64,000 nt of DNA from Selaginella moellendorffii (lineage: Eukaryota; Plantae; Lycopodiophyta). Positions 1,386 to 28,900 of the stretch are shown here, in pieces; position 1 is the first letter of the stretch; each line of letters opens with the position of its first letter. The notes beneath the pieces are model-generated. The model was given only the letters and a program-made list of their open reading frames with translations. It made no database searches and was not told the DNA's origin. Made by a program: the position numbers and the translations under genes. The DNA is taken from the NCBI RefSeq assembly GCF_000143415.4, contig NW_003314283.1, forward strand, positions 799,955-863,954, given 5' to 3'.

Positions 1386-2686
1386 TCGCATGCACACCAT
1401 AGCCCTCACCTTGGCTCACCTCAAACCCATATTTTAATTACCACTAATGGCTCGTTATTTTTGGTTTGCTTAGATATATTTAGAATATGCTTAGATATTC
1501 TAAGATATTCTACCATTTAACAGTTGTTATTCATTTAAATAATCTTGTATTTATAATTTATAAACATTTAAAAACCCTTTCTAGTATATTCATTTTTATT
1601 CTATCATCTAATGGTTTTGTGTTCATAAATTACAAACATGCTTATAATTATAAACTTTATTTTGGATTAATAAGTAATAATAAAACTACTATTAAGTAAA
1701 CCAAGCATTGCTACTCTCAGTTCAATGAGACAAAGTTTAAGAAATGTCATTTCTAATCAGTGTTTAATGTTAATTTTTTTATTAAAAAAGTAACCATTTT
1801 GTTGAGGTACCCCTCTTTCTCATTGTTGCCATCTTCTGGATTTTCATAAAACCACTACAAGGAGTTAGGGTTTGGCGTTCTGTCTTTTAGGTTTTGTAAC
1901 AAATTAGTGTATTTTCCATTTGACAGAATATTTGGTCAACAGTCGTTGCTATATGTGCGGGCCCCATGAATTGCAACTCACACTTTTTACATACAAAATT
2001 CATATTAACCTTTAAGTTAAAAGGATCCACATTGACAAATTTGTAACAACCTCAATGGAGGAGAACTCTCAGAAGGGAGACACCATTCCCATCATTTCTC
2101 CTAATACACAATGATTAGCATTTTAACATTAATGTCTAATAGTATGCAAATGTCTCAATCTAGACAAGTCATTAGGTGCTACCTTACATAAGTATATTAG
2201 AATATAAACCACCGTGATATATCAGAAACTAAATTGCATAAAAAATAATAAAATGAAAGCAAACCACGTTCACAACAAATTATTAATACTAATGCCTCTT
2301 TTTTTAATTAAATTATTTGATTTTTAAATTGTGCTAGAGTTTATGGTTCATGCACCTAAGAAAAATGTTACTTTCTACATGAAGATGTCTACATATTTAT
2401 CTATGAAGAATGAGATTAGAAATAGATAGAAATGTTTCCTTATGAGATTATAGGGTATTATTTGAATGCTTACAAATAAAATATAAGCTTGATTCTGTTA
2501 ATAAGTTTTTAAGAAAACCTTTTCTGATTTCAAAGGGTTTTTTTTAATTGTATTTTATTTGTGTCTTTTTTATTGTAAGGCTCTACTTTAAACTTCATAT
2601 TCTTATTATCTTAATACAGTAGAGCTTTGCAAAATATCAACGGTATATAGTAAGAGATCTTTGTCTCCTAGCATAAAGGATCTTAG

Positions 2687-3322
2687 TCAAACTTCACTTT
2701 CCAGGAAGGACTCGGGATTTGCCTGCTTCGCTTCCTTGTTATAGAAGAAAAAGGCCTCGGGATTAGCCTGCTTTACTTCCTTGTTATAGAAGACGAAGGA
2801 CTCAGGATTTGCTTGCTTTTCTTCCCTATTTGCTTGCTTCGCTTCCTTGTTATAGAAGACGAAGGACTCTGGATTTGCCTGCTTTACTTCCTTGTTATAG
2901 AAGACGAAGGACTCGGGATTTGCCTGCTTCACTTCCTTGTTATAGAAGACGAAGGCCTCGGGATTAGCCTGCTTCACTTCCTTGTTATAGAAGACGAAGG
3001 ACTCAGGATTTTCTTGCTTTTCTTCCTTATTTGCTTGCTTCGCTTCCTTGTCATACAAGAGGATGGACTCGGGATTTGCCTGCTTCGCTTCCTTGTTATA
3101 CAAGAAGAACGACTCGGGATTTGCCTGCTTCGCTTCCTTGTCATACAAGAGGATGGACTCGGGATTTGCCTGCTTTGCTTCATTGGTGTACATTACCTCT
3201 CCAGGCACTTGCTTTTCATTGTCCTTGAGTGTACGTAGTGCTGCAGCTGCCTGAAGTACATATATCATTCAGAAAACTTAGAAGCAGAGATTGATCTCAC
3301 CGTGAAAAACAAGAAGACTGTA
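2687..3322 (-). CDS. Repetitive secreted peptide precursor A (putative burpitide/cyclopeptide alkaloid precursor); start codon in the N gap
   Basis: Exon 1 partial 3301->3322 (..TVFLFFT), 50-nt GT-AG intron 3251-3300, exon 2 2687-3250. 15-aa repeats E(A/V)KQANPE(S/A)-xxxY-(N/D)K. Cores in order: ILLY, FFLY, ILLY, FVFY x5, FFFY. Confidence 0.85.
2705..3180. repeat. 45-nt coding tandem repeat of precursor A
   Basis: Unit gactcgggatttgcctgcttcgcttccttgttatagaagacgaag, with two 18-nt linker-only insertions. Confidence 0.95.
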
Positions 3323-3619
3323 NNNNNNNNNNNNNNNNNNNNNNNNNNNNNNNNNNNNNNNNNNNNNNNNNNNNNNNNNNNNNNNNNNNNNNNNNNNNNN
3401 NNNNNNNNNNNNNNNNNNNNNNNNNNNNNNNNNNNNNNNNNNNNNNNNNNNNNNNNNNNNNNNNNNNNNNNNNNNNNNNNNNNNNNNNNNNNNNNNNNNN
3501 NNNNNNNNNNNNNNNNNNNNNNNNNNNNNNNNNNNNNNNNNNNNNNNNNNNNNNNNNNNNNNNNNNNNNNNNNNNNNNNNNNNNNNNNNNNNNNNNNNNN
3601 NNNNNNNNNNNNNNNNNNN
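3323..3619. other. Assembly gap (N run)
   Basis: Run of Ns hiding the precursor A start codon and most of the shared promoter. Confidence 1.
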
Positions 3620-3694
3620 AAATACTGAACAAGTGGAAACATCACACCCACAAGAGTTCATATTATAATTATAGACTTTGCAATTCCAGAACTC

Positions 3695-4700
3695 ATGGCG
3701 GACACTTTGTTGGTTCTCATGTTCCTGGCATTATGTGTGATAAGCTTCACGAATTTCATAACTCTTCGAATCAAATCCAACTGATTGTGCTCTCCGCCAG
3801 GGATACTTGGAGGGATTCCAACTTCCACGCTCCATTCGTGAGAGGCTATCGCCCCTTGACGACGCTTCAGCGCTGCACATCAAGCAGGAACTCCAAGCTT
3901 CCAGCAGGATATCACACGAGTCGTGCAAAGCCGCTGGTCTCTTGTGCGGTGATGAACATCACTCCCTTCGTCAGCTTTTTCACCACCACCATGACCATCA
4001 CGACAGGAGCGCCATGGAATCCTCCACTCGAGATCTCGCCCAGAGGACCTTCTTTCAGCTCAAGACGCTTGTTGGTGCCAAGAACATACAGTTGCCACCG
4101 CCACTGCGCTGGGACAACTCCATCCCTGTGAGTAAATTCCTTCATCCGCTACTAGAGCCTGTGCTTGCGTCCATGAATCTGTCCCAGCTCCTGTCCACCA
4201 TGCACTTCTCGAGCCAGTCTCCATTCGCAGCGACGAGCAAGGATAGCCTGGAAATGTGCTCCTCCCACGGGGGGATCAAGCACGAGATCAAGGCTTGTCA
4301 CGTCTCGGCAAAGTCCATCCTGGATCAGGCCTCTTCGACCCTCCACAAGCTCGAGTTGAAGTATGTGGCCAACACTCTGGAGTTTGATCCGAACGAACCA
4401 TTCCAGGTGGTAGAGACGAGGGTGGTGGCTGCAGATGGATCTCTGGCCTGTCACCCCATGACTTTCCCATTCGCCATCTTCATGTGCCACACAATACCGA
4501 ACAGTCTCGTGTTGGAGGTGGATCTACTGAGAAGTTCTTCCAAGAAGACGAAGCCTGCCATGGTGAAAGTTCCTGCGGTTTGCCATATGGATACCTCTGA
4601 TTTCGCGCCTTCTCATATCTCTTTTAAGATTCTTAACACCAGGCCCGGCGAGGGAGAGGTTTGTCACTGGCTTCCTACTTCTCATCTCGTGTGGTATTAA
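3695..4700 (+). CDS. Stand-alone BURP-domain protein A (putative copper-dependent peptide cyclase); intron-1 donor mutated
   Basis: Signal-peptide exon MADTLLVLMFLALCV 3695-3739, exon 2 3801-4700. FF motif, then CH-x10-CH-x30-CH-x25-CH-x8-W. The donor reads AT at 3740 where copy B has GT. Confidence 0.85.
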
Positions 4701-5029
4701 GCTCCAAGCCTGAATGCTAGAGTGAATATATAGTAAAGTTTGATAACAAGGAGAATAAGAATTATGTGGCACTCCATGCCTCAACCGTCTTTTAATGAGC
4801 CAGCTTGAGACTGAGGATCTTCTTCGCAGCGAAAGAAGAAGACGTGATCGACTCCAAGCTGAGCGTCCACTAGATCTCTCATGAGGACCACAAAGGAGGG
4901 AGGGCCACAGTAATCCACATCTTTGTATGGGGCCGAGCTTGGGGGACATCCGTGGACACCATAGTTTGGAGCCAGATTGTTATAAAAAGCTCCTGGTTAA
5001 TAGCATTATATTATGATTCTTCCCAGGTT

Positions 5030-5140
5030 TTACCAGAAGAAAGAATTGGGATTTGGCTGCTTGGATCCTTCCATACCAGAACAAAGCTTCAGGATTTGGC
5101 TTCCTTGCCATGCCAGAAGAACGACTCAGGTTTTGGGAAC
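5030..5140 (-). pseudogene. Relic precursor repeats with Trp-containing cores
   Basis: Minus strand reads PKPES-FFWH-GKEA / KPNPEA-LFWY-G / KQPNPNS-FFW* across frameshifts. Confidence 0.7.
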
Positions 5141-5163
5141 ATAACATTTTGATAAAAAAAACC

Positions 5164-5409
5164 ATGGCTTGGTTCATTACAGTGCAATCTCAGTCCTTGA
5201 TTTCTAGCAACAACTTCAATGTACACCAAGAGAGCCTTAATATATTATACACTTTTCTCAACTTTGCAGATCTCAACTTTGCAGAATATCAACTTTTTAA
5301 AATCTCAACAGATCTCAACTTTGCAGATCTCAACTTCGCAGAATATCAAGTTTTAAAATCTCAACAGATCTCATCAGAAATCAACTTTGCAGACAACGCT
5401 GTAAATTAA
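5164..5409 (+). other. Short ORF starting MAWFITV with LNFA(D/E) repeats (copy A)
   Basis: The first 7 codons match precursor exon 1 (MAWLITV). Followed by the 15-nt repeat ctcaactttgcagat. Confidence 0.35.
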
Positions 5410-5574
5410 GAGATCCTTGTCTTCTAGCATAAATCGCAACTGGTGTCATTCAATCATCCACGTGAAACATCACTCTCCAGCAAGTTTTCAATAACACTTT
5501 TGCAGACAAAGTTTAACAATGACGTCGTACTTGTTTTGGTATATTTCTACTTTAACTATAGACTTGGACTAACG

Positions 5575-6342
5575 CCGGACACTTGTTTGGTTCTCGTATT
5601 ATGTGTATTAAGATTGACAACTCTTACAATCAAATCAAAACGATTGTTTACGAGATTCCATCTTCCACTATGACGCTTCAGCTCTGGCTATCAAGCAAGA
5701 AATCGAAGCTTCCGGCAGGATGTGACGTGAGTCAGTCTATTGTGCAGTGATGAACATCACTCCCTTTGTCAGCTCTTTCACCGATTCAGCGAAAGTGAAT
5801 CATTTTCTGTACATTGGACCCAAACATTTTTCCACTTTGCACAACTCTGTGGGGATAATAGGTTTTTGCATATTTGAAGGTAAGAGAGAGTGATTTTAAA
5901 ATTTGGACATTCTTCAAACCCCGAGTGCAACCATTTCTGAAAAATCCTAAAGAATATTGAACCAAATGATGACGTCATTATTTCGCCTTTTTGATTCCGG
6001 ACGAACGTTTGGTGCAAGGATAACCTGGCGATGTCCCAAGTCGCCGGGATCAAGCACCAGATCAAGTCTTATCACGTCTCCACAAAGTCCACTTCGACCC
6101 TCCCAAGCTCGAGTTGGACACTCCAAACGAATTATTCTAGGTGGTGGTGGCTGCATCGCCTGTCACCCCATACTTTCCCATTCACCATCTTCATGTGGCA
6201 CACGATACGGGAGAAGTTCTTCCAAGAAGACGAAGCCTGCCACGGTGAAAGCTCCAGTGGTTTGTCTTATGATTTCGAACCTTCTCACATCTCTTTTAAG
6301 ATTCTGGCCCGGCGAGGTACTTCTCATCTCGTGTGGTATTAA
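5575..6342 (+). pseudogene. Degenerate BURP-domain paralog
   Basis: Fragments GIKHQIKSYHVSTKS, ACHP..FPFTIFMWHTI, PSHISFKIL..TSHLVWY*. Many frameshifts; CH motifs partly lost. Confidence 0.85.
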
Positions 6343-6655
6343 GCTCCAAGCCTGCCAGGAAATGGAATGCATGATCGAAGCAACTACATAAAATTACCTT
6401 GAGCGGTAATCCCTTGTGCGTGTGAGATCGATCACAAGGAAAATAAAGACGTCGTTGTTCGTTTATCTCTTTGGATAGTTCCAACGCTAATCGAAAATAG
6501 ATTGTGGAATAGAGTTCTCTTAGAGAGCGGCTACAAGGCAAACAAGGATAAATTTCTTCCAAGAGGTATAAATGCTTGCGCGAACCAGTCGACACCCCGT
6601 AACAGAATTAGATACGTTGTTTCTGTCAAAGTTTCATTTCACTTATTTTAGATAC

Positions 6656-7985
6656 TTACGTGTTTGATTTCTTCACCTGTGGAAAGAAAAAAAAGATCAA
6701 ACAAAGAGAAAGAAGCGAACATTCAGTACCTTCTTCAGGTATAACTTATGGAACTTGAGCGCTTTTTGGCACGCTCGGTATGCGTCTATCTTGCCGCTCA
6801 TATTGTTCAGAGCCTGCGACGCATATTGTTACCAGGGAAAATGAGGAAAAAAAGGAAAAGCATTAAACTTTTCCTCACCCTCACGACTTCGTCCAGGCCT
6901 TGAATTCTCTTTATAAACTTGGATCGTAGCAGCACCAAGATCCCGGCTACAAAGAAAACTGCCAGGGACGGATGCTCGTTGAGGGCTCTTGGCGATCCAT
7001 ACTTAATGTTCCGCTTTGCAAATCTACCTCCAGCTCTATAGTCCGGCTGTACGTTGTCAATGTGACCATCTGGGGACTCCATGTAGAGAATTTGAACTCG
7101 AAAGCCCACATCATCTACAAAGAAAGAAAAACTCGCGTGGGCGAAAGAACATCAACATTTCACAACGGTTGGACTTACCTTCCAGAGGCTGAGCGTATCA
7201 ACGACCGAAAACTCCCGGCGAAAGTTAACCATGAGCATTCGAAACGCAAAAACATAGTTGCTCCCTCCAAGTGCCTCTACAAAAAAAGGTCGGCAAAGAC
7301 CTTCATCTTCGAAATCCTCACCTAGAGTTCTATGAAGCTTTGGATCGATTACTCGCATGGCAGCTGCGAGGAAGGAGAGCTCCTTCTGAACCCCCATCAT
7401 CTTATTCGTGCACCTGAAATTTTCCCGCTTGCCAACATCAAACGTGATAAACTTGGTACTAAGCGATATAAAATCTTGAGAAGCGCTTTGCAGAAAACGT
7501 ACCACTCGACGCATCAGGCACTTGAAGCACCAAAAGGCGTCAGCCTCGTCCGGGAAAAGGAGCACCATCGGCGAGCAAAGATCGCTCATACCTTGACAGT
7601 AGCCAACCTCCTCGTCGATCCAAGCGTACACTGCCAGGATGTCCCAGAGCTTTCCCAAGTTCTTGGGATCCTCGTAAAACTCTAAAACTCTATCCGTGCG
7701 AACTACATCCAGTCCTGCAAAGCGAAAGTTATGAAAAATAATCATACCAATCTGGTGGAGGAGGACTTTCCACTGGACAATCTTTGCGCTCGGCGATGGA
7801 TCCAGCACTCCATTTATTGTCTGCTCTTCAATGGATTCTGCTAATACTTGGACAGAAAGTGAAAAGCCCGAAGCAAACAAAGAAGTAACCACCTGGGTTA
7901 TTCTCCTCCATGGAAACTCCGTCGGCATTCATTCGCGGCGATATCACAACTTCACCACTTCCAACGGCCGCATCCATTCGTTTAC
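6656..7985 (-). pseudogene. TBC-domain RabGAP, 5'-truncated copy
   Basis: GLDVVRTDR, GYCQGMSDLCSP and FAFRMLMVNFRREFS motifs. Lacks the ~600 bp of 5' exons present in copy B and has small deletions. Confidence 0.8.
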
Positions 7986-8103
7986 ACACTCTACACGCTC
8001 TAAACTCTCGTTAAGTAATCGTACGAATATGCTCCATTCTTTGCTCCAGTTCGAATCGCGTAGCTAACGTTTAATTTTAATTCCACATTGTAACTATATT
8101 GCC

Positions 8104-9710
8104 ATGGACAAAGCCCAGTGCGTGGAGCTCATTCGATCGTGCAAAAGCCTCCCAATGGCCCAGGAGATCCACAAACGCATCCAGGCGAATCCACCACTCC
8201 ACGAGAGCCTCTTTGTCTACTGTTTAACCAGTTTGGCAGTCTCGTAAATGCCCGAAGCGTGTTTGATCGCATCGAGAACAAGGATGTTTTCTCGCTGGTT
8301 CTTATGCTCTGCGGCTACTCTCGCAGCGGGCAAGTTTCCAATGCAAAAGCCATCTTTGATTCCATGCCCGAAAAGAATCTTACAAGCTGGAACGCTATGA
8401 TGGCAGCATATGCCAAGAATGGGTATATGGACGAGGCAGAACTACTGTTTCAAGAGATGCCGTTTCACGATGCCGTGTCATGCAACACGCTCATAGCTGC
8501 ACACTCGCAAAGAGGGAATTTGGATACTGCGAATGAGATCTTTGATGACATGCTTTTTAAAACTCTACCATGCTGGAATGCCATGCTGTCTGCATATGCC
8601 ACAGGCTGGCATCTTGTACAAGCAAGACAGACATTTCACTCGATGCCTGCTCGAAATCTGATCTCTTGGACATTATTCTTAAACGCACTAATCATGGAGG
8701 ATGATCTTCAAATGACTAGAAGTGTTTTAGCGAAATGCCCTGCTGGAATCTGTTTGCCTGTAACTCAGTACTTTCCGCATATGCCCGAAAGGGGAATCTT
8801 CTCGAAGCCATGCTAACCTTTGACACAATGCTCGAGAGGGATATAATCACTTACACAAACATGCTGGAAGCTTTCATCCACAACGGTTGCCTCTTTGAAG
8901 CCAGCAATTTGTTCTCGCGGATGCCATAGCGGGATCTTGTGGCCTACACCGTAATGGAATCGGCCTATGCTCAAAAGGGCGAGCTCGAGAGAGCCGAGGC
9001 CATCTTCAACTCCATGCCGCAGCGTGATCTGGTCGCTTGGAACGCCATGATCCGGGGCTTACTCCCAACACGGCCGAGTCGAGCAAGCAAAGTTTCTCTT
9101 TGATTCCATGGCCGAGAGAAACTTGGTCTTCTGGACCTCAATGCTCACGGCTTACACAATAAGTGGCTACTTCTCGCAAGCAGAGCAAAACTCCGTCTCG
9201 TGGAATGCCATCCTTTGCATGTATGCTCAGCACGGCCATTTGAGCTCCGCAAGGAAGATTTTCGATGCCATGCCCGAGCAAGGAGTGGTATCATGGAGCG
9301 CCATGCTCGCTGCCCACGTAAGAAACTTGTCCTCTTCCCGTGCTCTCGAGCTCTTTGACGAGATGAAAGCTTTGCATTGTCCCGACGAAGCTAGCTTCTT
9401 CTCAGCTATGGTTTCGTTTGGACAGCAACGCTGCATCTCCAGAGCCAAGTCTTGCTTTGGTTCCATGGTGGCCGATATGAAGTGGCGCCATCAAAGCAGC
9501 ACTACTCTTGCATGGTGGATTTGCTCGTTCGATCTGGGAGAAGTTTGGAGGCCGAGGAACTTGTGTTTGCCATGCCTTTTAAGCCCAGTAACTTGGAATG
9601 GTCGTGCTTGCTGCGTGAAAGAAACTCCAGTTCGATGTTAATCACCAGAGGCAAGATCAAGTTCCTCGGATGGAGCGGTTTACGTGCTGCTTGCCAATGC
9701 ATTAACTTGA
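8104..9710 (+). pseudogene. PLS-type PPR gene, disrupted copy of 17598-19262
   Basis: Near-identical to the intact copy but with frameshifts and a CAG>TAG stop near 8927. Confidence 0.9.
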
Positions 9711-10136: not shown

Positions 10137-10230
10137 TTATGATAAGCTTTTGCTCCTATACCAAAAGAAAGAATCGGGATTTGGCTGCTCATACCAGAAC
10201 AAAGCATTGGGATTGGCTTCCGTGCCATGT
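10137..10230 (-). pseudogene. Relic precursor repeats with LFWY and FFWY cores
   Basis: In one frame: EANPNA-LFWY-EQPNPDS-FFWY-RSK. Confidence 0.7.
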
Positions 10231-10239
10231 TCTAACTTG

Positions 10240-10390
10240 TCTGAATGATATATGTACTTCAGGCATCTACAGCACTTCAAATGCTCAAGGACAAAGGGGC
10301 CACACTGCAATCTCAGTCCTTGATTTCTAGCAACAAGGTAATGTACGCATAGAAAAACGAATACACACCTTTTGCTCTTGTACCACAATG
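10240..10390 (+). pseudogene. Relic precursor paralog (copy B of 1170-1385)
   Basis: Acceptor ...gtacttcag, then ASTALQMLKDKGATLQSQSLISSNKVMYA*, then frameshifted TNTHLLLLYHN. Confidence 0.6.
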
Positions 10391-10724
10391 GAGCCTTTCT
10401 CACATGCACACCACAGCCCTCAAACCCATATTTCAATTATCACTACCCACCCTGCCCCAGGCTTGAGATCGGGGCTGGGTTCTTTATTTTTATTATTATA
10501 GATTACTATTTTATTAATTTTTCTTAAATATCAAGAAAGAAGTTTAAGAAATGTCACTCTTAATCTTTGTTTCTAATCAGTGTTTAATGTTAATTTTATT
10601 TATTAAAAAGGCAACTTTGCCATCTTTTTGGATTCATAAAACCGCTACGAGGAAGTTTTGTAGCGCCCCTTTTACACCCCAAGCATTTGCATTGGTTGTG
10701 GCTAAATGCAACACTTTAATGCCA

Positions 10725-10841: not shown

Positions 10842-11645
10842 AAAAAATTTAAAAATTAAGAAAAAGTTCAGTGTATTTTACATTTGACAGAATATTCTGT
10901 CAACAGTGTGGACTTGGCTCCCTATACCATGAATTGCAACTCACACTTTTTACATACAAAATTCATATTATCCTTTAAGTTAAAAGGATCCACATTGACA
11001 AATCTGTAACAACCTCAATGGAGGAGAACTCTCACAAGGGAGACACCATTCCCCATCATTTCTCCTAATACACAATGGTTAGCATTTTAACATTAATGTC
11101 CAATAGTAAGCAATTGCTCAATCTAAACAAGTCATTAGGTGCTACTTTACATATGCTAAATAGTATTAATATTTTGTTGTGAACGTGGTTTGCTTTCATT
11201 TTTATTATTTTTTATGCAATTTAGTTTTTGATATGTCACAGTGGTTTACTAATGCCTCTTTTTGTTAATTAAATTATTTGATTTTAAAATTGTGCTAAAG
11301 TTTATGGTTCGTTTGCTCCTAAGAAAAATTTTACTTTCTACATAAAGATGTCTACATATTTATATATGAAGAATGAGATTAGAGATAGATAGAAATGTTT
11401 CCTTGTGAGATTATAGGGTATTATTTGAATGCTTACAAATAAAATATAAGCTTGATTCTGTTTATAAAACCAATCAATGACATGCTGGGGTAACATGGTT
11501 AATTTAAACTGAATTATGTTTAAAGGTTAGAAGGACATTTTTCTGATTCGAAAGGGTTTTATTTTTTTTATTGTATTTTATTATCTCAATACATTAGAGA
11601 TTTGCAAAATATGAACGCAAGAGATCTTTGTCTCCTAGTTCTTAG

Positions 11646-12208
11646 TCAAACGTCACTTTCGAGGAAGGATTGGGGATTTGCCTGCTTCGCTTCCATGTTA
11701 TACAAGAGGATGGACTCGGGATTTGCCTGCTTCGCTTCCTTGTGATACAAGAGGATGGACTCGGGATTTGCCTGCTTCGCTTCCTTGTTATACAAGAGGA
11801 TGGACTCGGGATTTGCCTGCTTCGCTTCCTTGTCATACAAGAGGATGGACTCGGGATTTGCCTGCTTCGCTTCCTTGTCATACAAGAGGATGGACTCGGG
11901 ATTTGCCTGCTTCGCTTCCTTGTTATACAAGAAGAACGACTCGGGATTTGCCTGCTTCGCTTCCTTGTCATACAAGAGGATGGACTCGGGATTTGCCCGC
12001 TTCGTTTCCTTGTTATACAAGAGGATGGACTCGGGATTTGCCTGCTTTGCTTCATTGGTGTACATTACCTCTCCAGGCACTTGCTTTTCATTGTCCTTGA
12101 GTGTACGTAGTGCTGCAGCTGCCTGAAGTACATATATCATTCAGAAAACTTAGAAGCAGAGATTGATCTCACCGTGAAACACAAGAGGACTGTAATGAGC
12201 CACGCCAT
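11646..12208 (-). CDS. Repetitive secreted peptide precursor B, 170 aa (putative burpitide/cyclopeptide alkaloid precursor)
   Basis: join(12173-12208, 11646-12122) with a 50-nt GT-AG intron 12123-12172. Signal peptide MAWLITVLLCFTAAAA. Eight 15-aa repeats with cores ILLY x7 and FFLY x1. Confidence 0.9.
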
Positions 12209-12487
12209 GGTTTCTATGAAAATGTGGTGTTCTTGGATGTCCTTTTATAGTAAGGCTCTACTTTAAACTTCGTATTCTTATTATCTTAATACATTAGAGC
12301 TATCAAAATATCAACGCTGTATAGTAAAAGATCAGGATCTTCTTGGTCAGACGTCACTTTCCAGCAAGTTTTCAATGAAAATTTAAGTTCGTCCTTATCT
12401 CTTATACATAGAAAAATACTGAACAAGTGAAACATCACACCAACACAAGTTCATATTATAATTATAGACTTTGCAATTCCAGAACTC
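12209..12487. promoter_or_regulatory. 279-bp divergent (bidirectional) promoter region between precursor B and BURP B
   Basis: Start codons at 12208 (-) and 12488 (+). TATA-like ctataaaagg on the minus strand at 12241-12250. Confidence 0.6.
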
Positions 12488-13493
12488 ATGGCGGACACTT
12501 TGTTGGTTCTCATGTTCCTGGCATTATGTGTGGTAAGCTTCACGAATTTCATAACTCTTCGAATCAAATCCAACTGATTGTGCTCTCCGCCAGGGATACT
12601 TGGAGGGATTCCAACTTCCACGCTCCATTCGTGAGAGGCTATCGCCCCTTGACGACGCTTCAGCGCTGCACATCAAGCAGGAACTCCAAGCTTCCAGCAG
12701 GATATCACACGAGTCGTGCAAAGCCGCTGGTCTCTTGTGCGGTGATGAACATCACTCCCTTCGTCAGCTTTTTCACCACCACCATGACCATCACGACAGG
12801 AGCGCCATGGAATCCTCCACTCGAGATCTCGCCCAGAGGACCTTCTTTCAGCTCAAGACGCTTGTTGGTGCCAAGAACATACAGTTGCCACCGCCACTGC
12901 GCTGGGACAACTCCATCCCTGTGAGTAAATTCCTTCATCCGCTACTAGAGCCTGTGCTTGCGTCCATGAATCTGTCCCAGCTCCTGTCCACCATGCACTT
13001 CTCGAGCCAGTCTCCATTCGCAGCGACGAGCAAGGATAGCCTGGAAATGTGCTCCTCCCACGGGGGGATCAAGCACGAGATCAAGGCTTGTCACGTCTCG
13101 GCAAAGTCCATCCTGGATCAGGCCTCTTCGACCCTCCACAAGCTCGAGTTGAAGTATGTGGCCAACACTCTGGAGTTTGATCCGAACGAACCATTCCAGG
13201 TGGTAGAGACGAGGGTGGTGGCTGCAGATGGATCTCTGGCCTGTCACCCCATGACTTTCCCATTCGCCATCTTCATGTGCCACACAATACCGAACAGTCT
13301 CGTGTTGGAGGTGGATCTACTGAGAAGTTCTTCCAAGAAGACGAAGCCTGCCATGGTGAAAGTTCCTGCGGTTTGCCATATGGATACCTCTGATTTCGCG
13401 CCTTCTCATATCTCTTTTAAGATTCTTAACACCAGGCCCGGCGAGGGAGAGGTTTGTCACTGGCTTCCTACTTCTCATCTCGTGTGGTATTAA
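12488..13493 (+). CDS. Stand-alone BURP-domain protein B (putative copper-dependent peptide cyclase), 314 aa, intact
   Basis: join(12488-12532, 12594-13493) with a 61-nt GT-AG intron. Signal peptide, His-rich HHHHDHHD, FF start motif, four CH dipeptides and terminal W. No core repeats within the protein. Confidence 0.92.
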
Positions 13494-13809
13494 GCTCCAA
13501 GCCTGAATGCTAGAGTGAATGTATAGTAAAGTTTGATCACAAGGAGAATAACGATTGTGTGGCACTCCATGCCTCAAACGTCTTTTAATGAGCCAGCTTG
13601 AGACTGAGGATCTTCTTCGCAGCGCAAGAAAGAAGACGTGATCGACTCCAAGCTGAGCGTCCACTAGATCTCTCATGAGGACCACAAAGGAGGGAGGGCC
13701 ACAGTAATTCACATTTTTGTACGGGGTCGAGCTTGAGGGACATCCGTGGACACCATAGTTTGGAGCCAGATTGTTATCCAAAGCTCCTGGCTAATAGCAT
13801 TATATTGTG

Positions 13810-13900
13810 ATGCTTCCCAAAGAAAGAATTGGGATTTGGCTGCTTGCCATCCTTCCATACCGGAATAAAGCCAGAAGAAAGACTCAGGCTTTGGGAACGT
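13810..13900 (-). pseudogene. Relic Trp-core precursor repeats (copy B of 5030-5140)
   Basis: PKPES-FFWL.. and DGKQPNPNS-FFG fragments. Confidence 0.55.
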
Positions 13901-13920
13901 AACATTTTGATAAAAGAACC

Positions 13921-14196
13921 ATGGTTTGGTTCATTACAGTGCAATCTCAGTCCTTGATTTCTAGCAACAACTTCAATGTACACCAAGAAAGCCTTAATAT
14001 ATTGTACACGTTTCTCAACTTTGCAGAACATCAACTTTTTAAAAGCTCAACAGATTTCAACCTTGCAGGTCTCAACTTTGCAGATCTCAACTTTGCAGGT
14101 TTCAACTTTGCAACTCTCAACTTTGCAGGTCTCAACTTTGCAGGTCTCAACTTTTCAGATCTCAACTTTGCAGGTCTTAACTTTGCAGAATATTAA
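13921..14196 (+). other. Short ORF MVWFITV... with expanded LNFAG pentapeptide repeats (copy B)
   Basis: 15-nt tandem repeat ctcaactttgcaggt at ~14050-14190, open in frame with a precursor-like start. Confidence 0.35.
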
Positions 14197-14379
14197 CGCT
14201 GTAAATTAAGAGATCCTTGTCTTCTAGCATAAGCGCAACTGGTGTCATTCAATCATCCATGTGAAGCATCACTTTCCAGCAAGTTTTCAATGACAATTTT
14301 GCAGACAAAGTTTAACAACGACGTCTACTCGTGCTCTACTTGTTTGGTATATTTCTACTTTAACTATAGACTTGGACTC

Positions 14380-15198
14380 ACGGTGTTTGGTTCTCGTATT
14401 ATGTGTCTTAAGATTGACAACTCTTACAATCAAATCAAAACGATTGTTCACGAGATTCCAGCTTCCACCCTCAATCCATGAGACCCTTACGACGTTTCAG
14501 CTCTGGCTACCAGGCAAGAAATCAAAGCTTCCCGCAGGATGTGACGTGAGTCGTGCAAAGCCGCCGGTCTATTGTGTGGTGATGAACATCACTCCCTTCA
14601 TCAGCTCTTTCACCAGCCAGATTCAGCGAAAGTGAATAATTTTTTGTACATTGGACCCAAAGATTTTTCCACTTTGCACAACTCTGTGGGGATAATAGGT
14701 TTTTGCACATTTGAAGGTAAGAATGCACGCTTGAGAGAGTGATTTTAAAACTTGGACATTCTTCAAACCCTGAGGGCAACCATTTCTGAAAAATCCTAAA
14801 GAATATTATCCCACGGACTTTCATTTTTCTTAACACAACCAAATGATGACGTCATTACTTTGCCTTTTTGATTTGGCGATGTCCCAAGTCGCCGGGATCA
14901 AGCACCAGATCAAGTCTTATCACGTCTCCACAAAGTCCACTTCGACCCTTCCCAAGCTCGAGTTGGTGGAGACGAAGGTGGTGGCTGCATCGCCTGTCAC
15001 CCCATGACTTTCCCATTCGCCATCTTCATGTGGCACACGATACGGGAGAAGTTCTTCCAAGAAGACGAAGCCTGCCACGGTGAAAGTTTGTCTTATGATT
15101 TCGAACCTTCTCACATCTCTTTTAAGATTCTCAACACCAGGCCCAGCGTGGTAGAGGTCTGTCACTGGCTTCCTACTTCTCATCTCGTGTGGTATTAA
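14380..15198 (+). pseudogene. Degenerate BURP-domain paralog (unit B)
   Basis: ACHPMTFPFAIFMWHTI...PSHISFKILNTRPSVVEVCHWLPTSHLVWY*. Frameshifted upstream. Confidence 0.85.
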
Positions 15199-15526
15199 GC
15201 TCCAAGCCTGCCAGGAAATGGAATGCATGATCGAAGCAACTACACAAAATTACCTTGAGTGGTAATCCCTTGTGAGTGTGAGATCGAAAATAAAGACGTT
15301 TATCGTTGTTCGTTTATCTCTTTGGATAGTTCCAACGCTAATCGAAAATAGATTGTGGAATAGAGTTCTCTTAGAGAGCGGCTACAAGGCAAACAAGGAT
15401 AAATTTCTTCCGAGGTATAAATGCTTGCGAGAACCAGTCGACACCCCGTAACAGAATTAGATACGAGATTTGCCCCGACCTTTGTTTCTGTCAAAGTTTC
15501 ATTTCACTTATTTTAGATACTTGTTA

Positions 15527-17413
15527 CTATGTGTTCGATTTCTTCACCTGTGGAAAGAAAAAAAGATCAAACAAAGAGAAAGAAGCGAACATTCAGTACC
15601 TTCTTCAGGTATAACTTATGGAACTTGAGCGCTTTTTGGCACGCTCGGTATGCGTCTATCTTGCCGCTCATATCGTTCAAAGCCTGCGACGTATATTGTT
15701 ACCAGGGAAAATGAGGAAAAAAGGAAAGCATTAAACTGTTCCTCACCCTCACGACTTCGTCCAGGCCTTGAATTCTCTTTATAAACTTGGATCGTAGCAG
15801 CACCAAGATCCCGGCTACAAAGAAAACTGCCAGGGACGGATGCTCGTTGAGGGCTCTTGGCGATCCATACTTAATGTTCCGCTTTGCAAATCTACCTCCA
15901 GCTCTATAGTCCGGCTGTGCGTTGTCAATGTGACCATCCGGGGACTCCATGTAGAGAATTTGAAGGTCGGGATGGTACTCGAAAGCCCACATCATCTACA
16001 AAGAAAGAAAAGCTCGCGTGGGCGAAAGAACATAAACATTTCACAACGGTTGGACTTACCTCCCAGAGGGTGAGCGTATCAACGAACGAAAACTCCCGGC
16101 GAAAGTTAACCATGAGCATTCGAAACGCAAAAATATAGTTGCTCCCTCCAAGTGCCTCTACAAAAAAAGGTCGGCAAAGACCTTCATCTTCGAAATCCTC
16201 ACCTAGAGTTCTATGAAGCTTTGGATCGATTACTCGCATGGCAGCTGCGAGGAAGGAGAGCTCCTTCTGAACCCCCATCATCTTATTCGTGCACCTGAAA
16301 TTTTCCCGCTTGCCAACATCAAACGTGATAAACTTCAATGAACGGTACTAAGCGATATAAAATCTTGAGAAGCGCTTTGCAAAAAACGTACCACTCGACG
16401 CATCAGGCACTTGAAGCACCAAAAGGCGTCAGCCTCGTCCGGGAAAAGGAGCACCATCGGCGAGCAAAGATCGCTCATACCTTGACAGTAGCCAACCTCC
16501 TCGTCGATCCAAGCGTACACTGCCAGGATGTCCCAGAGCTTTCCCAAGTTCTTGGGATCCTCGTAAAACTCTAAAACTCTATCCGTGCGAACTACATCCA
16601 GTCCTGCAAAGCGAAAGTGAGCACGCGAAACAGAAAAATAATCATACCAATCTGGTGGAGGAGAACTTTCCACTGGACAATCTTTGCGCTCGGCGATGGA
16701 TCCAGCACTCCATTTATTGTCTGCTCTTCAATGGATTCTGCTAATACTTGGACAGAAAGTGAAAAGCCCGAAGCAAACAAAGAAGTAACCACCTGGATTA
16801 TTCTCCTCCATGGAAACTCCGTCGGCATTCATTCGCGGCGATATCACAACTTCGCCACTTCCAACGGCCGCATCCATTCTCTTACACTCGGCCTTGAGCT
16901 TCAAGTATTTGTCACTGTAAAAACCAACGCGGTTTCTCTCGCAGATCAAATCCAATCGATAAAACAAGCCAAAGTATCTACCGTCGCGATTGACGAAGCT
17001 CTTCCCTTTCGGCAGCATTGCTGCCGGGGGAGTAAACACCCAAAAGAAACTCCCAGACGTGAGCGCGAATCTCCGACGCAACGCCCTACAGGAAAGAAGA
17101 AGAGACTTCGCTACTGGAAATGCAGCACAAGATTTACCCCTCTTTCGATGTGCCGAAGAACTCGCTTCACATTGAGCCGCCCTTGCGCGTCAAACGCAGC
17201 CCGCCATTTCTCCGCCGAGAGCTTCCTCCGCCTCCGCCTCTAAATCGATCAAACCACAGCTCAGATCGACACAAATCCAGCCGAGAATCCGTCACAAACC
17301 GGCACGGAGCTCGTCGCCACATCCTGACACTCGCTCCGGACCCTGTAAATCTCGGAATCATCCTCCATAGAGAAGCCTTGCCTCTGCTCGCTCGCGCAGG
17401 CCAGCAGCGGCAT
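15527..17413 (-). CDS. TBC-domain Rab GTPase-activating protein (multi-exon)
   Basis: LSAEKWRAAFD, VWEFLLG, LDVVRTDR, YCQGMSDL, FAFRMLMV.FRREFSF motifs; last exon VKKSNT*. The start codon is approximate. Confidence 0.85.
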
Positions 17414-17597
17414 CCTGCGCCTCACGGATCGCGCAGATCGACAGCCCGGAGCCTCCGCATTGCGTCGCGGAGCTCTACACTCTCTATAGAACCCTAAACT
17501 CTCGTTAAGTAATCGTTCGAATATGCTCCATTCCTTGCTCCGGTTCGAATCCCGTAGCTAACGTTTAATTTTTATTCCACATTGTAACTATGTTGCC

Positions 17598-19262
17598 ATG
17601 GACAAAGCCCAGTGCGTGGAGCTCATTCGATCGTGCAAAAGCCTCCCAATGGCCCAGGAGATCCACAAATGCATCCAGGCGAATCCACCACTCCCACCAC
17701 ACGAGAGCCTCTTTGTCTCCAACAATCTCCTCGCACTGTTTAACCAATTTGGCAGCCTCGTAAATGCCCGAAGCGTCTTTGATCGCATCGAGAACAAGGA
17801 TGTTTTCTCGCTGGTTCTTATGATCTGCGGCTACTCTCGCAGTGGGCAAGTTTCCAATGCAAAAGCCATTTTTGATTCCATACCCGAGAAGAATCTTACA
17901 AGCTGGAACACTATGGTGGCAGCATATGCCAAGAATGGGTATCTGGACGAGGCAGAAGTTTTGTTTCAAGAGATGCCATTTCATGATGCCGTGTCATGCA
18001 ACACGCTCATAGCTGCACACTCGCAAAGAGGGCATTTGGATACTGCAAAGGGGATCTTTGATGACATGCTTTTTAAAACTCTACCATGCTGGAATGCCAT
18101 GCTGTTTGCATATGCCACAGGTCGGGATCTTGTACAAGCAAGACAGACATTTCACTCAATGCCTGCTCGAAATCTGATCTCTTGGACATCATTCTTAAAC
18201 GCACTAATCATGGAGGAAGATCTTCAAATGACTAGAAAATGTTTTAACGAAATGCCCTGCTGGAATCTGTTTGCCTGTAACTCAGTACTTTCCGCATATG
18301 CCCGAAAGGGGAATCTTCTCGAAGCCATGCTAACCTTTGACACAATGCTCGAGAGGGATATAATCACTTACACAAACATGCTGGAAGCTTTCATCCACAA
18401 CGGTTGCCTCTTTGAAGCCAGCAATTTGTTCTCGCGGATGCCACAGCGGGATCTCGTGGCCTACACCGTAATGCAATCGGCCTACGCTCAAAACTGCGAG
18501 CTCGAGAGAGCCGAGGCCATCTTCAACTCCATGCCGCAGCGTGATCTGGTCGCTTGGAACGCCATGATCGGGGCTTACTCCCAACACGGCCGAGTCGAGC
18601 AAGCAAAGTTTCTCTTTGATTCCATGGCCGAGAGAAACTTGGTCTCCTGGACCTCAATGCTCACGGCTTACACAATAAGTGGCTACTTCTCGCAAGCAAA
18701 GCTCGTCTTTCTCGACATGTCCGAGCAAAACTCCGTCTCGTGGAATGCCATCCTTTGCATGTATGCTCAGCACGGCCATTTGAGCTCCGCAAGGAAGATT
18801 TTCGATGCCATGCCCGAGCAAGGAGTGGTATCATGGAGCGCCATGCTCGCTGCCCACGTGAGAAACTTGTCCTCTTCCCGTGCTCTCGAGCTCTTTGACG
18901 AGATGAAAGCTTTGCATTGTCCCGACGAAGCTTGCTTCTTCTCGGCTATGGTTTCGTTTGGGCAGCAAGGCTGCATCTCCAGAGCCAAGTCTTGCTTTGG
19001 TTCCATGGTGGCCGACTATGAAGTGGCGCCATCAAAGCAGCACTACTGTTGCATGGTGGATTTGCTCGTTCGATCTGGGAGAAGTTTGGAGGCCGAGGAA
19101 CTTGTGTTGGCCATGCCTTTTGAGCCCAGTAACTTGGAATGGTCGTGCTTGCTACGTGAAAGAAACTCCAGCTCGATGTTAATCACCAGAGGCAAGCATG
19201 CTTTAAGATCAAGTTCCTCAGATGGAGCGGTATACGTGCTGCTTGCCAATGCATTAACTTGA
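17598..19262 (+). CDS. PLS-class pentatricopeptide repeat protein with E-like C-terminus, 554 aa
   Basis: Intronless ORF of ~31-aa repeats (F..MP.RDLVAWNAMI.AY.Q.G) and a C-terminal HY.CMVDLL.RSG motif. Confidence 0.93.
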   Translation: MDKAQCVELIRSCKSLPMAQEIHKCIQANPPLPPHESLFVSNNLLALFNQFGSLVNARSVFDRIENKDVFSLVLMICGYSRSGQVSNAKAIFDSIPEKNLTSWNTMVAAYAKNGYLDEAEVLFQEMPFHDAVSCNTLIAAHSQRGHLDTAKGIFDDMLFKTLPCWNAMLFAYATGRDLVQARQTFHSMPARNLISWTSFLNALIMEEDLQMTRKCFNEMPCWNLFACNSVLSAYARKGNLLEAMLTFDTMLERDIITYTNMLEAFIHNGCLFEASNLFSRMPQRDLVAYTVMQSAYAQNCELERAEAIFNSMPQRDLVAWNAMIGAYSQHGRVEQAKFLFDSMAERNLVSWTSMLTAYTISGYFSQAKLVFLDMSEQNSVSWNAILCMYAQHGHLSSARKIFDAMPEQGVVSWSAMLAAHVRNLSSSRALELFDEMKALHCPDEACFFSAMVSFGQQGCISRAKSCFGSMVADYEVAPSKQHYCCMVDLLVRSGRSLEAEELVLAMPFEPSNLEWSCLLRERNSSSMLITRGKHALRSSSSDGAVYVLLANALT

Positions 19263-25900: not shown

Positions 25901-28900
25901 AAATTTAAATTGAGGTACGTGATTCAGTCCCTAACTCAAAATTACTCATTACATAAGCAACTTTGGTAGAGAGTTGTTCTCGATATCTACTAGCCCTCCA
26001 AGGGAAGCTCAGGGGTAGCTTTGTTAAGATTTTTATTGACACAGGTGCTTTGGATAATTTTGTGGCTGCAAACATAGTCCGGCAAGCTAGATTAACAGTG
26101 CAATAGTTGGGCGAACCAAGGACTATAGAGTTTGTTCAAGGTAGCCAAAGCATCAATGAGGTACTTCGATAAGCAAGAGTCAAAGTAGAGACATGGAAAG
26201 TAGACATGGATTTCACCATGTTGGACATGGCGGGATTTGGCGTAATCTTTGAGATGGATTGGTTCAATCGATTCATGGTAGCCCTGCATGGACAAAGTGG
26301 GAACCTTGTGGTAATGGTGAATACCCGAGGAGAATGATCCAGAGTGGAGGCCTAGGATCTAAAGGTAGAGCAATGTAAGGCCAAAGACTCCTGCTTGAAC
26401 CTGGTGCCCACAAAAGGATAACTCACTAAAGGAACCAAGGCAGTATTTCTGTGCTTACTCTCGATGAAGAGTGACAAAAAAATGGGATTAAAAAAAGTGC
26501 CTTTGGTGATCTAGTGGGTGTTGGACTAATTCCAAGATACCATGCTGGAGGAGCTACCGGCGGGGTTACCCCCTGAACGACCGATAGAACATAAGATTGA
26601 GCTGGTCGAGGGTGCTAAGGTGGTGGTTCATCCCCCTTATCGATTGAATGAAAAGGAACTTGAGGAGCTCAAAAGCCAACTTGAGGAGTTTGTGGGAAAA
26701 GGGTATGTTAGGTTGAGCAAGTCACTGTATGATACACCGGTGTTATTTGTGAAAAAAAAAGATGGATCTATGCACATGTGCATAGACTACCAATTGCTTA
26801 ACAAATATATAAAGGAGAACAAATACCCTTTACCAAGGATTGAGGACTTGTTCGATAGGTTGGGAAAGGCAAAATACTTCTCGAGGATCAACCTAAGGTC
26901 AGGATACTACCAGATTAGGGTAGTAGAGGAAGATGTTAAGAAGACAATCTGTCAGACAAAGTATGGAAGCTTTGAGTTTCTAGTGATGCCCTTTGGGCTG
27001 TGCAATGCACCAACAACGTTCTCAGTGTTGATGAATCATATTTTTGTACCCTATTTGGATCATTTTTTGGTCGTCTACATTGACGACATCTTGATCTATA
27101 GCGAAATGCTAAAAGAGCATGCCGAACACTTAACAAAGGTGTTTGAGAAACTAAGGGAACACTAGCTATATGCTAAAGAAAGCAAATGTGACTTTGCTTA
27201 ACAAGAGGTAAAGTTTCTTATGCATATGGTAGGCAAGGACAGGCTCAAGGTGGACCCTGAGAAGGTTCAAGCGATCTAAGAATGGGAATGACTATCGAAT
27301 GTACACAAGTTAAAGGCATTTTTGAGGCTATGCAACTACTCCCAAAAGTTTATCAAACACTATTCAAGAGTAACTCTGCCTTTAACGGACTAAATGGGAA
27401 AATTATATGTGAACAAGACGTAGATGAGTTGTCCACTTAATTCCTCACGAGTGGCCTTTTTATTCCAAGTACTATGCAAACCCTTCCACCATCATGACAG
27501 TGGAATGCGAAGTGGCATTCATCCACCTCAAAGGGAAGTTGAGGAAGGCTCCTATGTTGGCATTACCAGACTTTGGTAAGGACTTTGAGGTAAAAACAAA
27601 TGCTTCAGACTTTGTGTTATGCGCAGTGTTGAAGCAAAACAACCATCCAATAGCATTCTTCTCGAAGAAGTTGGACAAGGCTCAGCGAAAGTGGCTTGCC
27701 CATGAGAAGGAATTGTTTGTGGTGGTCAAGGCACTCAAGGAGTGGCAACACTACCCTAGGAGAGAGTTCAAAGTTTACATAGATAATATGGTAACGAAAC
27801 ACTTTTTGTCACAGTCTGACCTAAAAGGGAAACAAGGTCGGTGGGCCAATGCTTTTGCCAAGTTTGATTGTGAGATTCTGTACAAGCCTGGGAAGAGCAA
27901 CATTGTGGTGGATGCTCTAAGTTGAAAAGCGAGCTTGAAATTGGTGATATCCAGTGCGACAACAACCTTTTGGGATGATGTGCGGATAGCATATAAGAAT
28001 GATGGTCTAGCACAAGAAGTGTTGCTAAGGAACCTAGAGGCATGGGAAGCTCATCAGAGAGGTGAGCTGCCAATGGAAGAGAAAACAGGCTATGCGGAAC
28101 ACAGTGGACTCATATATTATAAACAAACAAGGGTGTACATTCTAGAAGGGGAACTAAGGAAGGTAGCCTTAAAAGAATGTCATGACGGACTTTTTGTGGG
28201 ACATGGCGGAATGCCCAAGATGATGGGTTTAATCAAGAGGAAGTATCACTGGCGAGATATAGCTAAGAACATCCAAAACTATGTAAAGACATGTCTAATA
28301 TGTTAGCAGATCAAAGCCGTGACTAAGGCTAGTGGGGGTTTGTTACAAAGCATTCCAATTCTAGATTGTCCATGGAAATGTTTTACAATGGACTTTATCA
28401 TGGGACTCCCTCGAAGCGAGGGGTTTGATGTGATATTTGTGGTGGTGGACCGGTTTTTGAAGATGGCACATTTAATACTCATCATAACAAAAGTGGATAT
28501 GGAAGGTGTGGCGAAACTGTTCTTTGAACAAGTGGTTTGAGTGCGGGGAAGGCTAGAAGAGATTATCTCATATCGAGATAAAATCTTCATTAGTAGGTTA
28601 TGGAGAACTCTTCTAGAATAGTATCGCACCAAATTGAAATTCAACACAGCCTATCACCCATAGATAGGTATTGGGTATTAAGTCAAGGTTGATGGCACTA
28701 ATACTTCTTGACAGATGGACAAATGGAAAAGGTGAATATGTAGTTGGAGGATTATTTGTGATGCTATATCTCAGGAGACTAAACATATTGGGTAAGTCAT
28801 TTGGGACTTGCGAAAATGTGTTATAACAACTCATCATATTTGAGTATCGGGGTGAGTCTATGGGAAGTCATCAATGGGTAAGTTATTAAAGGTCCTATGG

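Follow-up and report, generated by a model that had tools for sequence, protein, structure and literature searches.

A probable split burpitide cassette in Selaginella moellendorffii: a tetrapeptide-repeat precursor head-to-head with a stand-alone BURP protein

Introduction

SkrBURP from Selaginella kraussiana, the one characterised lycophyte burpitide system, gives rise to selanines A and B. It is a fused, autocatalytic and copper-dependent protein, which joins a tyrosine oxygen to a leucine beta-carbon to close a 14-membered ring in cores such as VLFYPSY and ILLYPSY (PMC11253845), and a monocyclic product from an ILLY core has also been reported for it (PMC10349150). Split systems, in which the cores lie in a precursor that is separate from the cyclase, were defined in eudicots, where they are nearly ubiquitous (PMC10107690). 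The eudicot split precursors mostly belong to PF10950 and commonly carry an Ax6YWx7PMP leader motif, and Asn and His flank the cores of Ceanothus and Ziziphus. In vitro, ILLY (the frangulanine core) and FFFY are both cyclised by the split enzyme CamB1, which joins Tyr4 to residue 2; for ArbB2, a Phe at position -7 of the substrate is indispensable, Ser(-1) and Pro(-3) contribute, and the His residues of the four Cys-His pairs, which bind two coppers, are essential (PMC12186524). Here we describe a locus within a 64,000-nucleotide stretch of Selaginella moellendorffii DNA (the window), in which a gene for a secreted protein made of repeated tyrosine-ended tetrapeptides (precursor B) stands head-to-head with a gene for a stand-alone BURP protein (BURP B), and which we read as a probable split burpitide cassette of the cyclopeptide-alkaloid type.

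Results

A divergent precursor and BURP gene pair

The start codons of precursor B and BURP B are 279 bp apart and the two genes diverge from the region between them. The features of the cassette, with the evidence for each in brackets, are as follows.

11646..12122, minus strand: precursor B exon 2, stop codon included (sequence and RNA contigs)
12123..12172, minus strand: precursor B intron, 50 nt, GT..AG on the minus strand (RNA contig joint)
12173..12208, minus strand: precursor B exon 1, the ATG and 11 signal peptide codons, MAWLITVLLCFT (in the NCBI 170-aa gene model)
12209..12487, unstranded: divergent intergenic region, 279 bp, presumed shared promoter (sequence)
12488..12532, plus strand: BURP B exon 1, signal peptide MADTLLVLMFLALCV (sequence)
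12533..12593, plus strand: BURP B intron, 61 nt, GT..AG (RNA contig joint)
12594..13493, plus strand: BURP B exon 2, comprising an N-terminal segment (CKAAGLLC), a core-free His-rich linker and the BURP domain (Pfam, PDB and AlphaFold2)

Precursor B is a two-exon gene on the minus strand (11646-12208), and NCBI calls its product at exactly the same 170 aa, unnamed and without a Pfam family. The hydrophobic N-terminus of the protein, MAWLITVLLCFTAAAA, which we call a signal peptide by eye only, is followed by a short leader, so that exon 2 holds the end of the signal peptide, the leader, eight spacer-plus-core units and a core-less tail that closes the protein (...NPQSFLESDV). Each unit consists of an 11-aa spacer with the consensus (N/D/H)KEAKQANPES and a 4-aa core, seven of the cores being ILLY and one FFLY, and each core is followed by NK, DK, HK or NM. 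In the DNA these units form a tandem array with a period of 45 bp, 9.0 copies long and with 93% matches. Since this array is open in six of six reading frames, the openness or length of an open reading frame (ORF) is in itself no proof of the frame, which is fixed instead by the orientation of the intron and by the in-frame ATG of exon 1. Precursor B thus has the parts by which the precursor of a split pathway is recognised, namely a signal peptide, an alternation of recognition sequence and core, and cores that end in Tyr, all in a separate protein. A fused precursor would hold cores and BURP domain in one polypeptide; here the cores are encoded apart from it, by a gene of the other strand.

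Positions 11400-13700 were compared with RNA-derived contigs of four runs, all of them from separate studies. The 50-nt precursor B intron (CT..AC on the plus strand) is skipped exactly in three of the four runs (X1, X5 and X10), and the 61-nt GT..AG intron of BURP B is skipped exactly in all four; both genes are transcribed and spliced as modelled. Spliced transcripts of precursor and BURP are found together in the RNA runs, which is a matter of co-presence rather than of correlated expression. The summed contig depth of the precursor far exceeds that of the BURP gene in every run, although this figure is inflated by the repeats and is not a measure of expression.

Some contigs depart from the window. 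The precursor transcripts of X1, X5 and X10 diverge from it upstream of 12233, in the 5' untranslated region (UTR; loose end CAGAAGAAAAACTTAGCAGC...), and show three mismatches to it in exon 1. Their source is probably another cassette, for example a copy (cassette A, below) whose 5' end lies in an assembly gap. BURP transcripts in X6 and X10 run on after 13504 with the sequence of ~15258, downstream of a BURP pseudogene, through either a long non-canonical skip in the 3' UTR or, more likely, a paralogue or haplotype that lacks the pseudogene segment. An odd back-joint, 12301>11619, is present in RNA contigs of X5 and X6. Within the intergenic region, ~12280-12365 resembles 11580-11660 by eye and looks like a relic of the 3' end of another precursor.

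BURP B has the BURP signature, the BURP fold and no cores of its own

BURP B is a two-exon gene on the plus strand (12488-13493) that encodes a stand-alone protein of 314 aa with a signal-like N-terminus. It matches the Pfam BURP family PF03181 with an E-value of 2.7e-43 and 148.5 bits (cut-off 27) over profile positions 2-215 of 216, and a sequence search against the PDB finds AhyBURP (8sy2) at E 2e-8. Its Cys-His pairs, C232H233, C244H245 (X10), C276H277 (X30) and C303H304 (X25), are followed by W313 (X8), and thus spell out the BURP pattern CH-X10-CH-Xn-CH-Xn-CH-X8-W; in an alignment of 64 BURP sequences the pairs are invariant or at least 90% conserved. An AlphaFold2 model of the protein (predicted local distance difference test score, pLDDT, 86.4; predicted template modelling score, pTM, 0.83) has AhyBURP 8sy2/8sy3 as its only significant fold matches in the PDB (Foldseek, E 1.6e-10 to 3.4e-9). 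Because no 5-mer is repeated in the 314 residues and the His-rich linker is free of Tyr/Trp motifs, BURP B has no cores of its own. The conserved N-terminal segment CKAAGLLC also occurs in stand-alone BURP proteins of Ginkgo and others.

These results bear out all the testable points of an initial annotation that was made from the letters of the window. It had proposed a spliced, signal-peptide-bearing 170-aa protein of ILLY/FFLY repeats, which the exact gene model and the splicing of the RNA contigs confirm; a spacing of 279 bp between divergent genes, which agrees with the coordinates of both start codons; and a secreted BURP protein with four Cys-His motifs and no cores, as is now supported by the PF03181 match, the four pairs and the lack of repeats. 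It had also made its reading depend on the existence of a spliced precursor transcript, and the exact intron skip in three of the four RNA runs provides one. The probable lycophyte host that it named can be stated outright, as BURP B is 100% identical to the S. moellendorffii proteins XP_024534238.1/XP_024534417.1 ('BURP domain-containing protein BNM2C-like') and the window matches scaffold GL377587.1 of assembly GCA_000143415.2 at 100% identity.

The nearest relative of BURP B is a proven cyclase

An exhaustive HMMER search of 1.84 billion representatives returned 703 relatives of BURP B. The best non-self match is the 525-aa SkrBURP of S. kraussiana (QXY82431), with 152 bits as against 119 for the next, and the two proteins share 39% identity over 217 residues. 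Placing the BURP protein in a phylogeny had been suggested together with the initial annotation, and a maximum-likelihood tree built from 48 BURP domains pairs the S. moellendorffii proteins with SkrBURP, a proven cyclase, as sisters (support 95/80). A fused protein of S. uncinata, a putative lyciumin precursor, groups with both (97/96), and the eudicot stand-alone BNM2-like BURPs, represented by proteins of Cinchona, Malania and Oleaceae as proxies for ArbB2, CamB1 and ZjuBURP, fall inside a separate angiosperm clade (100/99). An approximately unbiased test rejects a union of the S. moellendorffii proteins with the eudicot stand-alone BURPs (p 0.0008), the group having been named after the tree was seen. 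We take the split layout to have arisen, most probably, inside the BURP lineage of Selaginella and independently of the split systems of eudicots.

Conserved spacers and variable hydrophobic cores

Six precursors, from this window and a second scaffold described below, provide 42 units that were stacked for comparison, on the understanding that they are recent duplicates and not independent samples. All 42 units share TAT as their Tyr codon. Codon position 2 of the core is also invariant, being T in residues 1-3, so that these residues are always hydrophobic. The amino-acid diversity of core residues 1-3 (0.50-0.58) is above that of most spacer positions, four of which are invariant across the 42 units. 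At the level of sequence, this combination of conserved spacer and variable core is that of multi-core precursors of ribosomally synthesised peptides that are modified post-translationally (RiPPs). Reading away from the core, spacer positions -1 to -11 are S, E, P, N, A, Q, K, A, E, K and N; none of the 11 is hydrophobic, and the nearest hydrophobic residues are those of the preceding core, at -12 to -15.

The precursor lies outside the eudicot family PF10950 (DUF2775), which gave no match even at E<=1 in the four precursor sequences scanned, and the precursor's other Pfam matches (DUF4811, DUF1829, T2SSS_2 and others) were set aside as noise, being repeat-inflated whole-sequence scores with no convincing domain. 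A homology between the spacer and the SkrBURP repeat, of the kind that gene fission would leave, was not established: the BLASTP E-value of 2e-9 did not hold up in a repeat-aware permutation test. With the repeats kept in place, a score as high as the real one came from 66 of 2000 permutations of the unit and from 430 of 2000 permutations of the spacer only. An origin by fission of a fused gene is thus conjecture.

Duplication and turnover of the cassette

The window holds a second copy of the locus, in which a further precursor (precursor A) and BURP gene (BURP A) make up cassette A.

1901..9500, unstranded: segmental duplicate of 10863-19041 (BLAST; 79-94% identical by segment)
2687..3250, minus strand: precursor A exon 2, cassette A (sequence and NCBI gene call)
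3695..4700, plus strand: BURP A gene, cassette A (one mismatch with BURP B in 1006 nt)

The segmental duplication spans ~8.8 kb, its identity is lowest across the repeat array, and each unit contains a precursor, a BURP gene, a frameshifted BURP pseudogene, RabGAP-TBC fragments and a PPR gene. The cores of precursor A are ILLY, FFLY, ILLY, five copies of FVFY, and FFFY. Its exon 1 is lost in an assembly gap (3323-3619), so that the NCBI product, also unnamed and without a Pfam family, is shortened to 168 aa; this exact 168-aa sequence is absent from the protein collection, and a protein search found no relatives of the precursor. We had considered that the precursor genes were unannotated, and dropped the idea on finding that NCBI gene calls hold the precursors as unnamed products on GL377587.1 and GL377593.1.

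The single difference between BURP A and BURP B falls on the first base of the intron (3740 and 12533, respectively), where copy A has AT rather than GT as its donor; BURP A may be mis-spliced, or the AT base may be an assembly error. Since the exons are identical, transcripts are not assignable to one gene or the other. The 99.9% identity of the two genes extends no further than 40 nt on the upstream side of the gene and 27 nt on its downstream side, beyond which the immediate flanks differ by ~5-6% (~94% identical). From these near-identical genes in diverged flanks, we read gene conversion between BURP A and B, with a tract that matches the gene.

A second scaffold, GL377593.1, which is probably the other haplotype of the sequenced plant, carries four further head-to-head cassettes (1067121-1116415). 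One of its precursors has ILLY twice, FVFY five times (with one more FVFY behind a variant NSES spacer) and FFFY; another has FVFY 14 times, a third ILLY eight times, and a fourth FLFY and FVFY. FVFY is the commonest core on this scaffold. Four cassettes against two probably reflect variation between haplotypes in both copy number and core repertoire. The head-to-head layout of precursor and BURP gene is found in six of six cassettes across the two scaffolds. The pairing has been kept in all of them, while in the window both cassettes have a second, pseudogenised BURP copy as neighbour and unit A has a broken PPR gene.

Traces of turnover surround the cassettes. Three BURP pseudogenes with frameshifts, stops and deletions (1-897, 5957-6391 and 14242-15198), of which two follow the intact cassettes, one each on the downstream side, and the third is cut off where the window begins, keep recognisable CH motifs and a C-terminal ...CHWLPTSHLVWY. 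Precursor-like relics with Trp-containing cores (...LFWY...FFWY...) and N-termini (MIYVLQAS...) at 10137-10436, 13774-14034 and 5053-5140 are fossil precursors between cassettes. The PPR gene is an intact 554-aa gene in unit B (17598-19262), and its unit A counterpart (8118-9641) is split into two ORFs.

Other genes in the window

Among the window ORFs of at least 110 aa that were scanned, there was no methyltransferase, 2-oxoglutarate (2OG) oxygenase or peptidase, although multi-exon genes could be missed in this way; that no N-methyltransferase is visible in the window had been noted before and holds for the ORFs scanned. The jujube pathway is also unclustered for its tailoring steps (PMC12871766), so that the lack of a tailoring gene is no argument against a burpitide pathway here. 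The ORFs otherwise encode PPR, RabGAP-TBC, gypsy retroelement, NmrA-like NAD(P)-binding, PUF/CCCH and ATG1-like kinase proteins. Two Ty3/gypsy-type retrotransposons with reverse transcriptase and integrase ORFs (26500-28650 and 36066-40230) are both flanked by 12-nt GAGTCC-type microsatellite arrays.

Discussion

A functional split burpitide cassette is the reading that we favour, with a probability of roughly 0.72. It is supported by the expression of both genes, by the stand-alone BURP protein and its kinship with SkrBURP, and by the precedents for ILLY and FFFY as cores, and to that extent the split RiPP pathway put forward in the initial annotation has gained ground. The same annotation had named ILLY as the backbone of frangulanine, in keeping with the cyclisation of ILLY by CamB1 as the frangulanine core (PMC12186524). 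The relation of enzyme to substrate, the bond formed, the release of the peptides and any N-methylation or decarboxylation are steps that we infer.

Under this reading, both proteins would enter the secretory pathway, where copper-loaded BURP, with O2, would tie the Tyr4 phenol oxygen to the beta-carbon of the Leu, Phe or Val at residue 2, each cross-link removing 2 Da and closing a 14-membered ring per core. The cores would be recognised via the short upstream spacer, which has the Pro(-3) and Ser(-1) of Coffea ArbA2, and general host proteases would afterwards set free cyclo-ILLY, -FFLY, -FVFY, -FFFY and -FLFY. Any N-methylation or decarboxylation would be encoded elsewhere. The cassette has been amplified by tandem duplication, to two copies in the window and four on GL377593.1, with cyclase copies that stay nearly identical and a core repertoire that varies from copy to copy.

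Several observations weigh against a functional split cassette. The Ax6YWx7PMP leader motif is absent from the precursor under both a strict and a relaxed regular expression, and the precursor spacer has neither Phe nor another hydrophobic residue at -7 with charged flanks, the position at which Phe is essential for ArbB2. We found no precedent for a cross-link to a Val beta-carbon, as FVFY would require, and no literature report of cyclopeptide alkaloids from S. moellendorffii. The contig depths of the two genes are only loosely concordant across the four runs, and BURP A, with its AT splice donor, may be non-functional. Finally, the six cassettes derive from one ancestral arrangement, and their adjacency counts as one event, not six.

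One alternative accepts that the BURP protein cross-links the cores and takes the secreted, cross-linked repeat protein to be the end product, rather than a source of free cyclopeptides. Lima et al. left the same question open for most PF10950 'organ-specific' proteins (PMC10107690), no dedicated peptidase was found among the window ORFs scanned, and the cores are flanked by Ser(-1) and N/D/H(+1), not by the Asn and His of Ceanothus and Ziziphus. SkrBURP cores are, however, released in N. benthamiana without a dedicated protease, and S. kraussiana accumulates free selanines and the ILLY monocycle (PMC11253845, PMC10349150); the precursor, moreover, consists almost wholly of spacer-plus-core units, the typical layout of a multi-core RiPP. 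On balance we consider a cross-linked end product unlikely.

The cassette might also be split as proposed and yet form a different bond, be it a Tyr C-C bond of the hibispeptin type, a link to residue 1 or 3 (giving a 13- or other-membered ring), or two rings across neighbouring units. BURP cyclases make C-O, C-N and C-C bonds, the type of which is not predictable from sequence (PMC11253845), BURP B is only 39% identical to SkrBURP, and the clade's S. uncinata protein is a putative precursor of a lyciumin (Trp-N). Yet both characterised enzymes that act on xLxY/xFxY cores, SkrBURP and CamB1, link Tyr4-O to the beta-carbon of residue 2, and the cores here have nothing like the SkrBURP extension PSY to serve as a second aromatic acceptor, so that another bond type seems to us quite unlikely. 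It is very unlikely that the adjacency is incidental, the pair having been co-duplicated as an unrelated low-complexity secreted protein and a BURP protein with another role (non-catalytic, in stress or in the cell wall, as proposed for RD22/USP-type proteins), for although the pairing in six cassettes from one ancestral unit is a single observation and many BURP proteins have no known substrate, the cores are the four-residue motifs that SkrBURP and CamB1 cyclise (PMC10349150, PMC12186524), Tyr is kept in all 42 units beside core residues 1-3 that are always hydrophobic, precursor and BURP have stayed intact while the second BURP copies and one PPR copy decayed, and a genome with ~6 BURP genes (PMC8672867) makes chance adjacency improbable.

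A more specific version of the split-cassette reading, which we hold tentatively and rate at a little under an even chance, is that lycophytes evolved a split of their own. It would combine a cyclase of the fused lineage with a non-PF10950 precursor and an 11-residue recognition element, lacking the hydrophobic anchor on which eudicot cyclases depend, with the preceding core possibly being read instead. Rapid birth and death of the cassettes and gene conversion among the cyclase copies would between them generate haplotype-specific libraries of 14-membered cyclopeptides, including a new Val-linked FVFY scaffold.

In the literature searched, we found no paper that describes a split burpitide system in S. 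moellendorffii or any other lycophyte. The gene models are already public, since NCBI predicts both genes; it is the pair as a pathway that is undescribed in that literature, and the plantiSMASH 2.0 rules for repeats outside a BURP domain could flag the locus automatically. Descriptions of split cassettes have until now been confined to flowering plants, where they count as a eudicot feature; in lycophytes, the single system characterised is fused. A cassette that is intact and expressed in a model lycophyte would place the separate-substrate and potentially multi-turnover form outside seed plants too. With its 11-aa spacer and 4-aa core, the compact precursor and its putative enzyme make an attractive minimal pair for biocatalysis. 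The cores are scaffolds of pharmacologically interesting 14-membered cyclopeptide alkaloids, ILLY being that of frangulanine, and the reading predicts unreported compounds in a well-studied model plant. What is new is the lineage, the non-homologous precursor, the different recognition element and, probably, the independence of the split; the logic of the chemistry is known.

Comparison with known systems

Of the described systems, peanut AhyBURP (USP-type; 8SY2/8SY3) shares with BURP B its fold (Foldseek E 1.6e-10, probability 1.00, target TM 0.62-0.65) and the same four Cys-His pairs, at ~17% identity in the structural alignment; unlike BURP B, it is fused and makes Trp-N links of the lyciumin/legumenin type.

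The layout is shared with the eudicot split systems. Coffea ArbA2/ArbB2, Ceanothus CamA1/CamB1 and Ziziphus ZjuPrec/ZjuBURP, like the cassette described here, each set a stand-alone BURP protein beside a multi-core precursor with a signal peptide and a C-terminal core Tyr. The CamA1 cores ILLY and FFFY are identical to Selaginella cores, the Pro(-3) and Ser(-1) of ArbA2 are matched in the Selaginella precursor (KPGS before FLWGY, NPES before ILLY), and Ziziphus also has tandem arrays of precursor and BURP genes. The Selaginella precursor nevertheless lacks the Asn(-1)/His(+1) demarcation of the Ceanothus and Ziziphus precursors, its spacer has 11 aa where ArbB2 needed a recognition sequence of ~15 aa, and BURP B belongs to the Selaginella clade, in the lycophyte lineage, whereas the eudicot stand-alone BURPs form a separate clade.

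SkrBURP is the closest relative of BURP B. Both come from the genus Selaginella, both are secreted, and both involve multi-core arrays of hydrophobic xLxY/xFxY motifs that include ILLY. In SkrBURP, however, the cores are part of the same polypeptide and directly follow the signal peptide, whereas here they lie in a separate, divergent gene; its cores have 6-7 residues (VLFYPSY, ILLYPSY, FLLYPY) and yield bicyclic products, compared with 4 residues in the cassette; and its repeat unit is ~26 aa long, as against an 11-aa spacer and a 4-aa core. BURP B also keeps the CKAAGLLC N-terminal segment, which SkrBURP lacks. SkrBURP and BURP B thus offer a fused and a split counterpart within one genus, in which the interconversion of autocatalytic and trans-acting forms can be studied.

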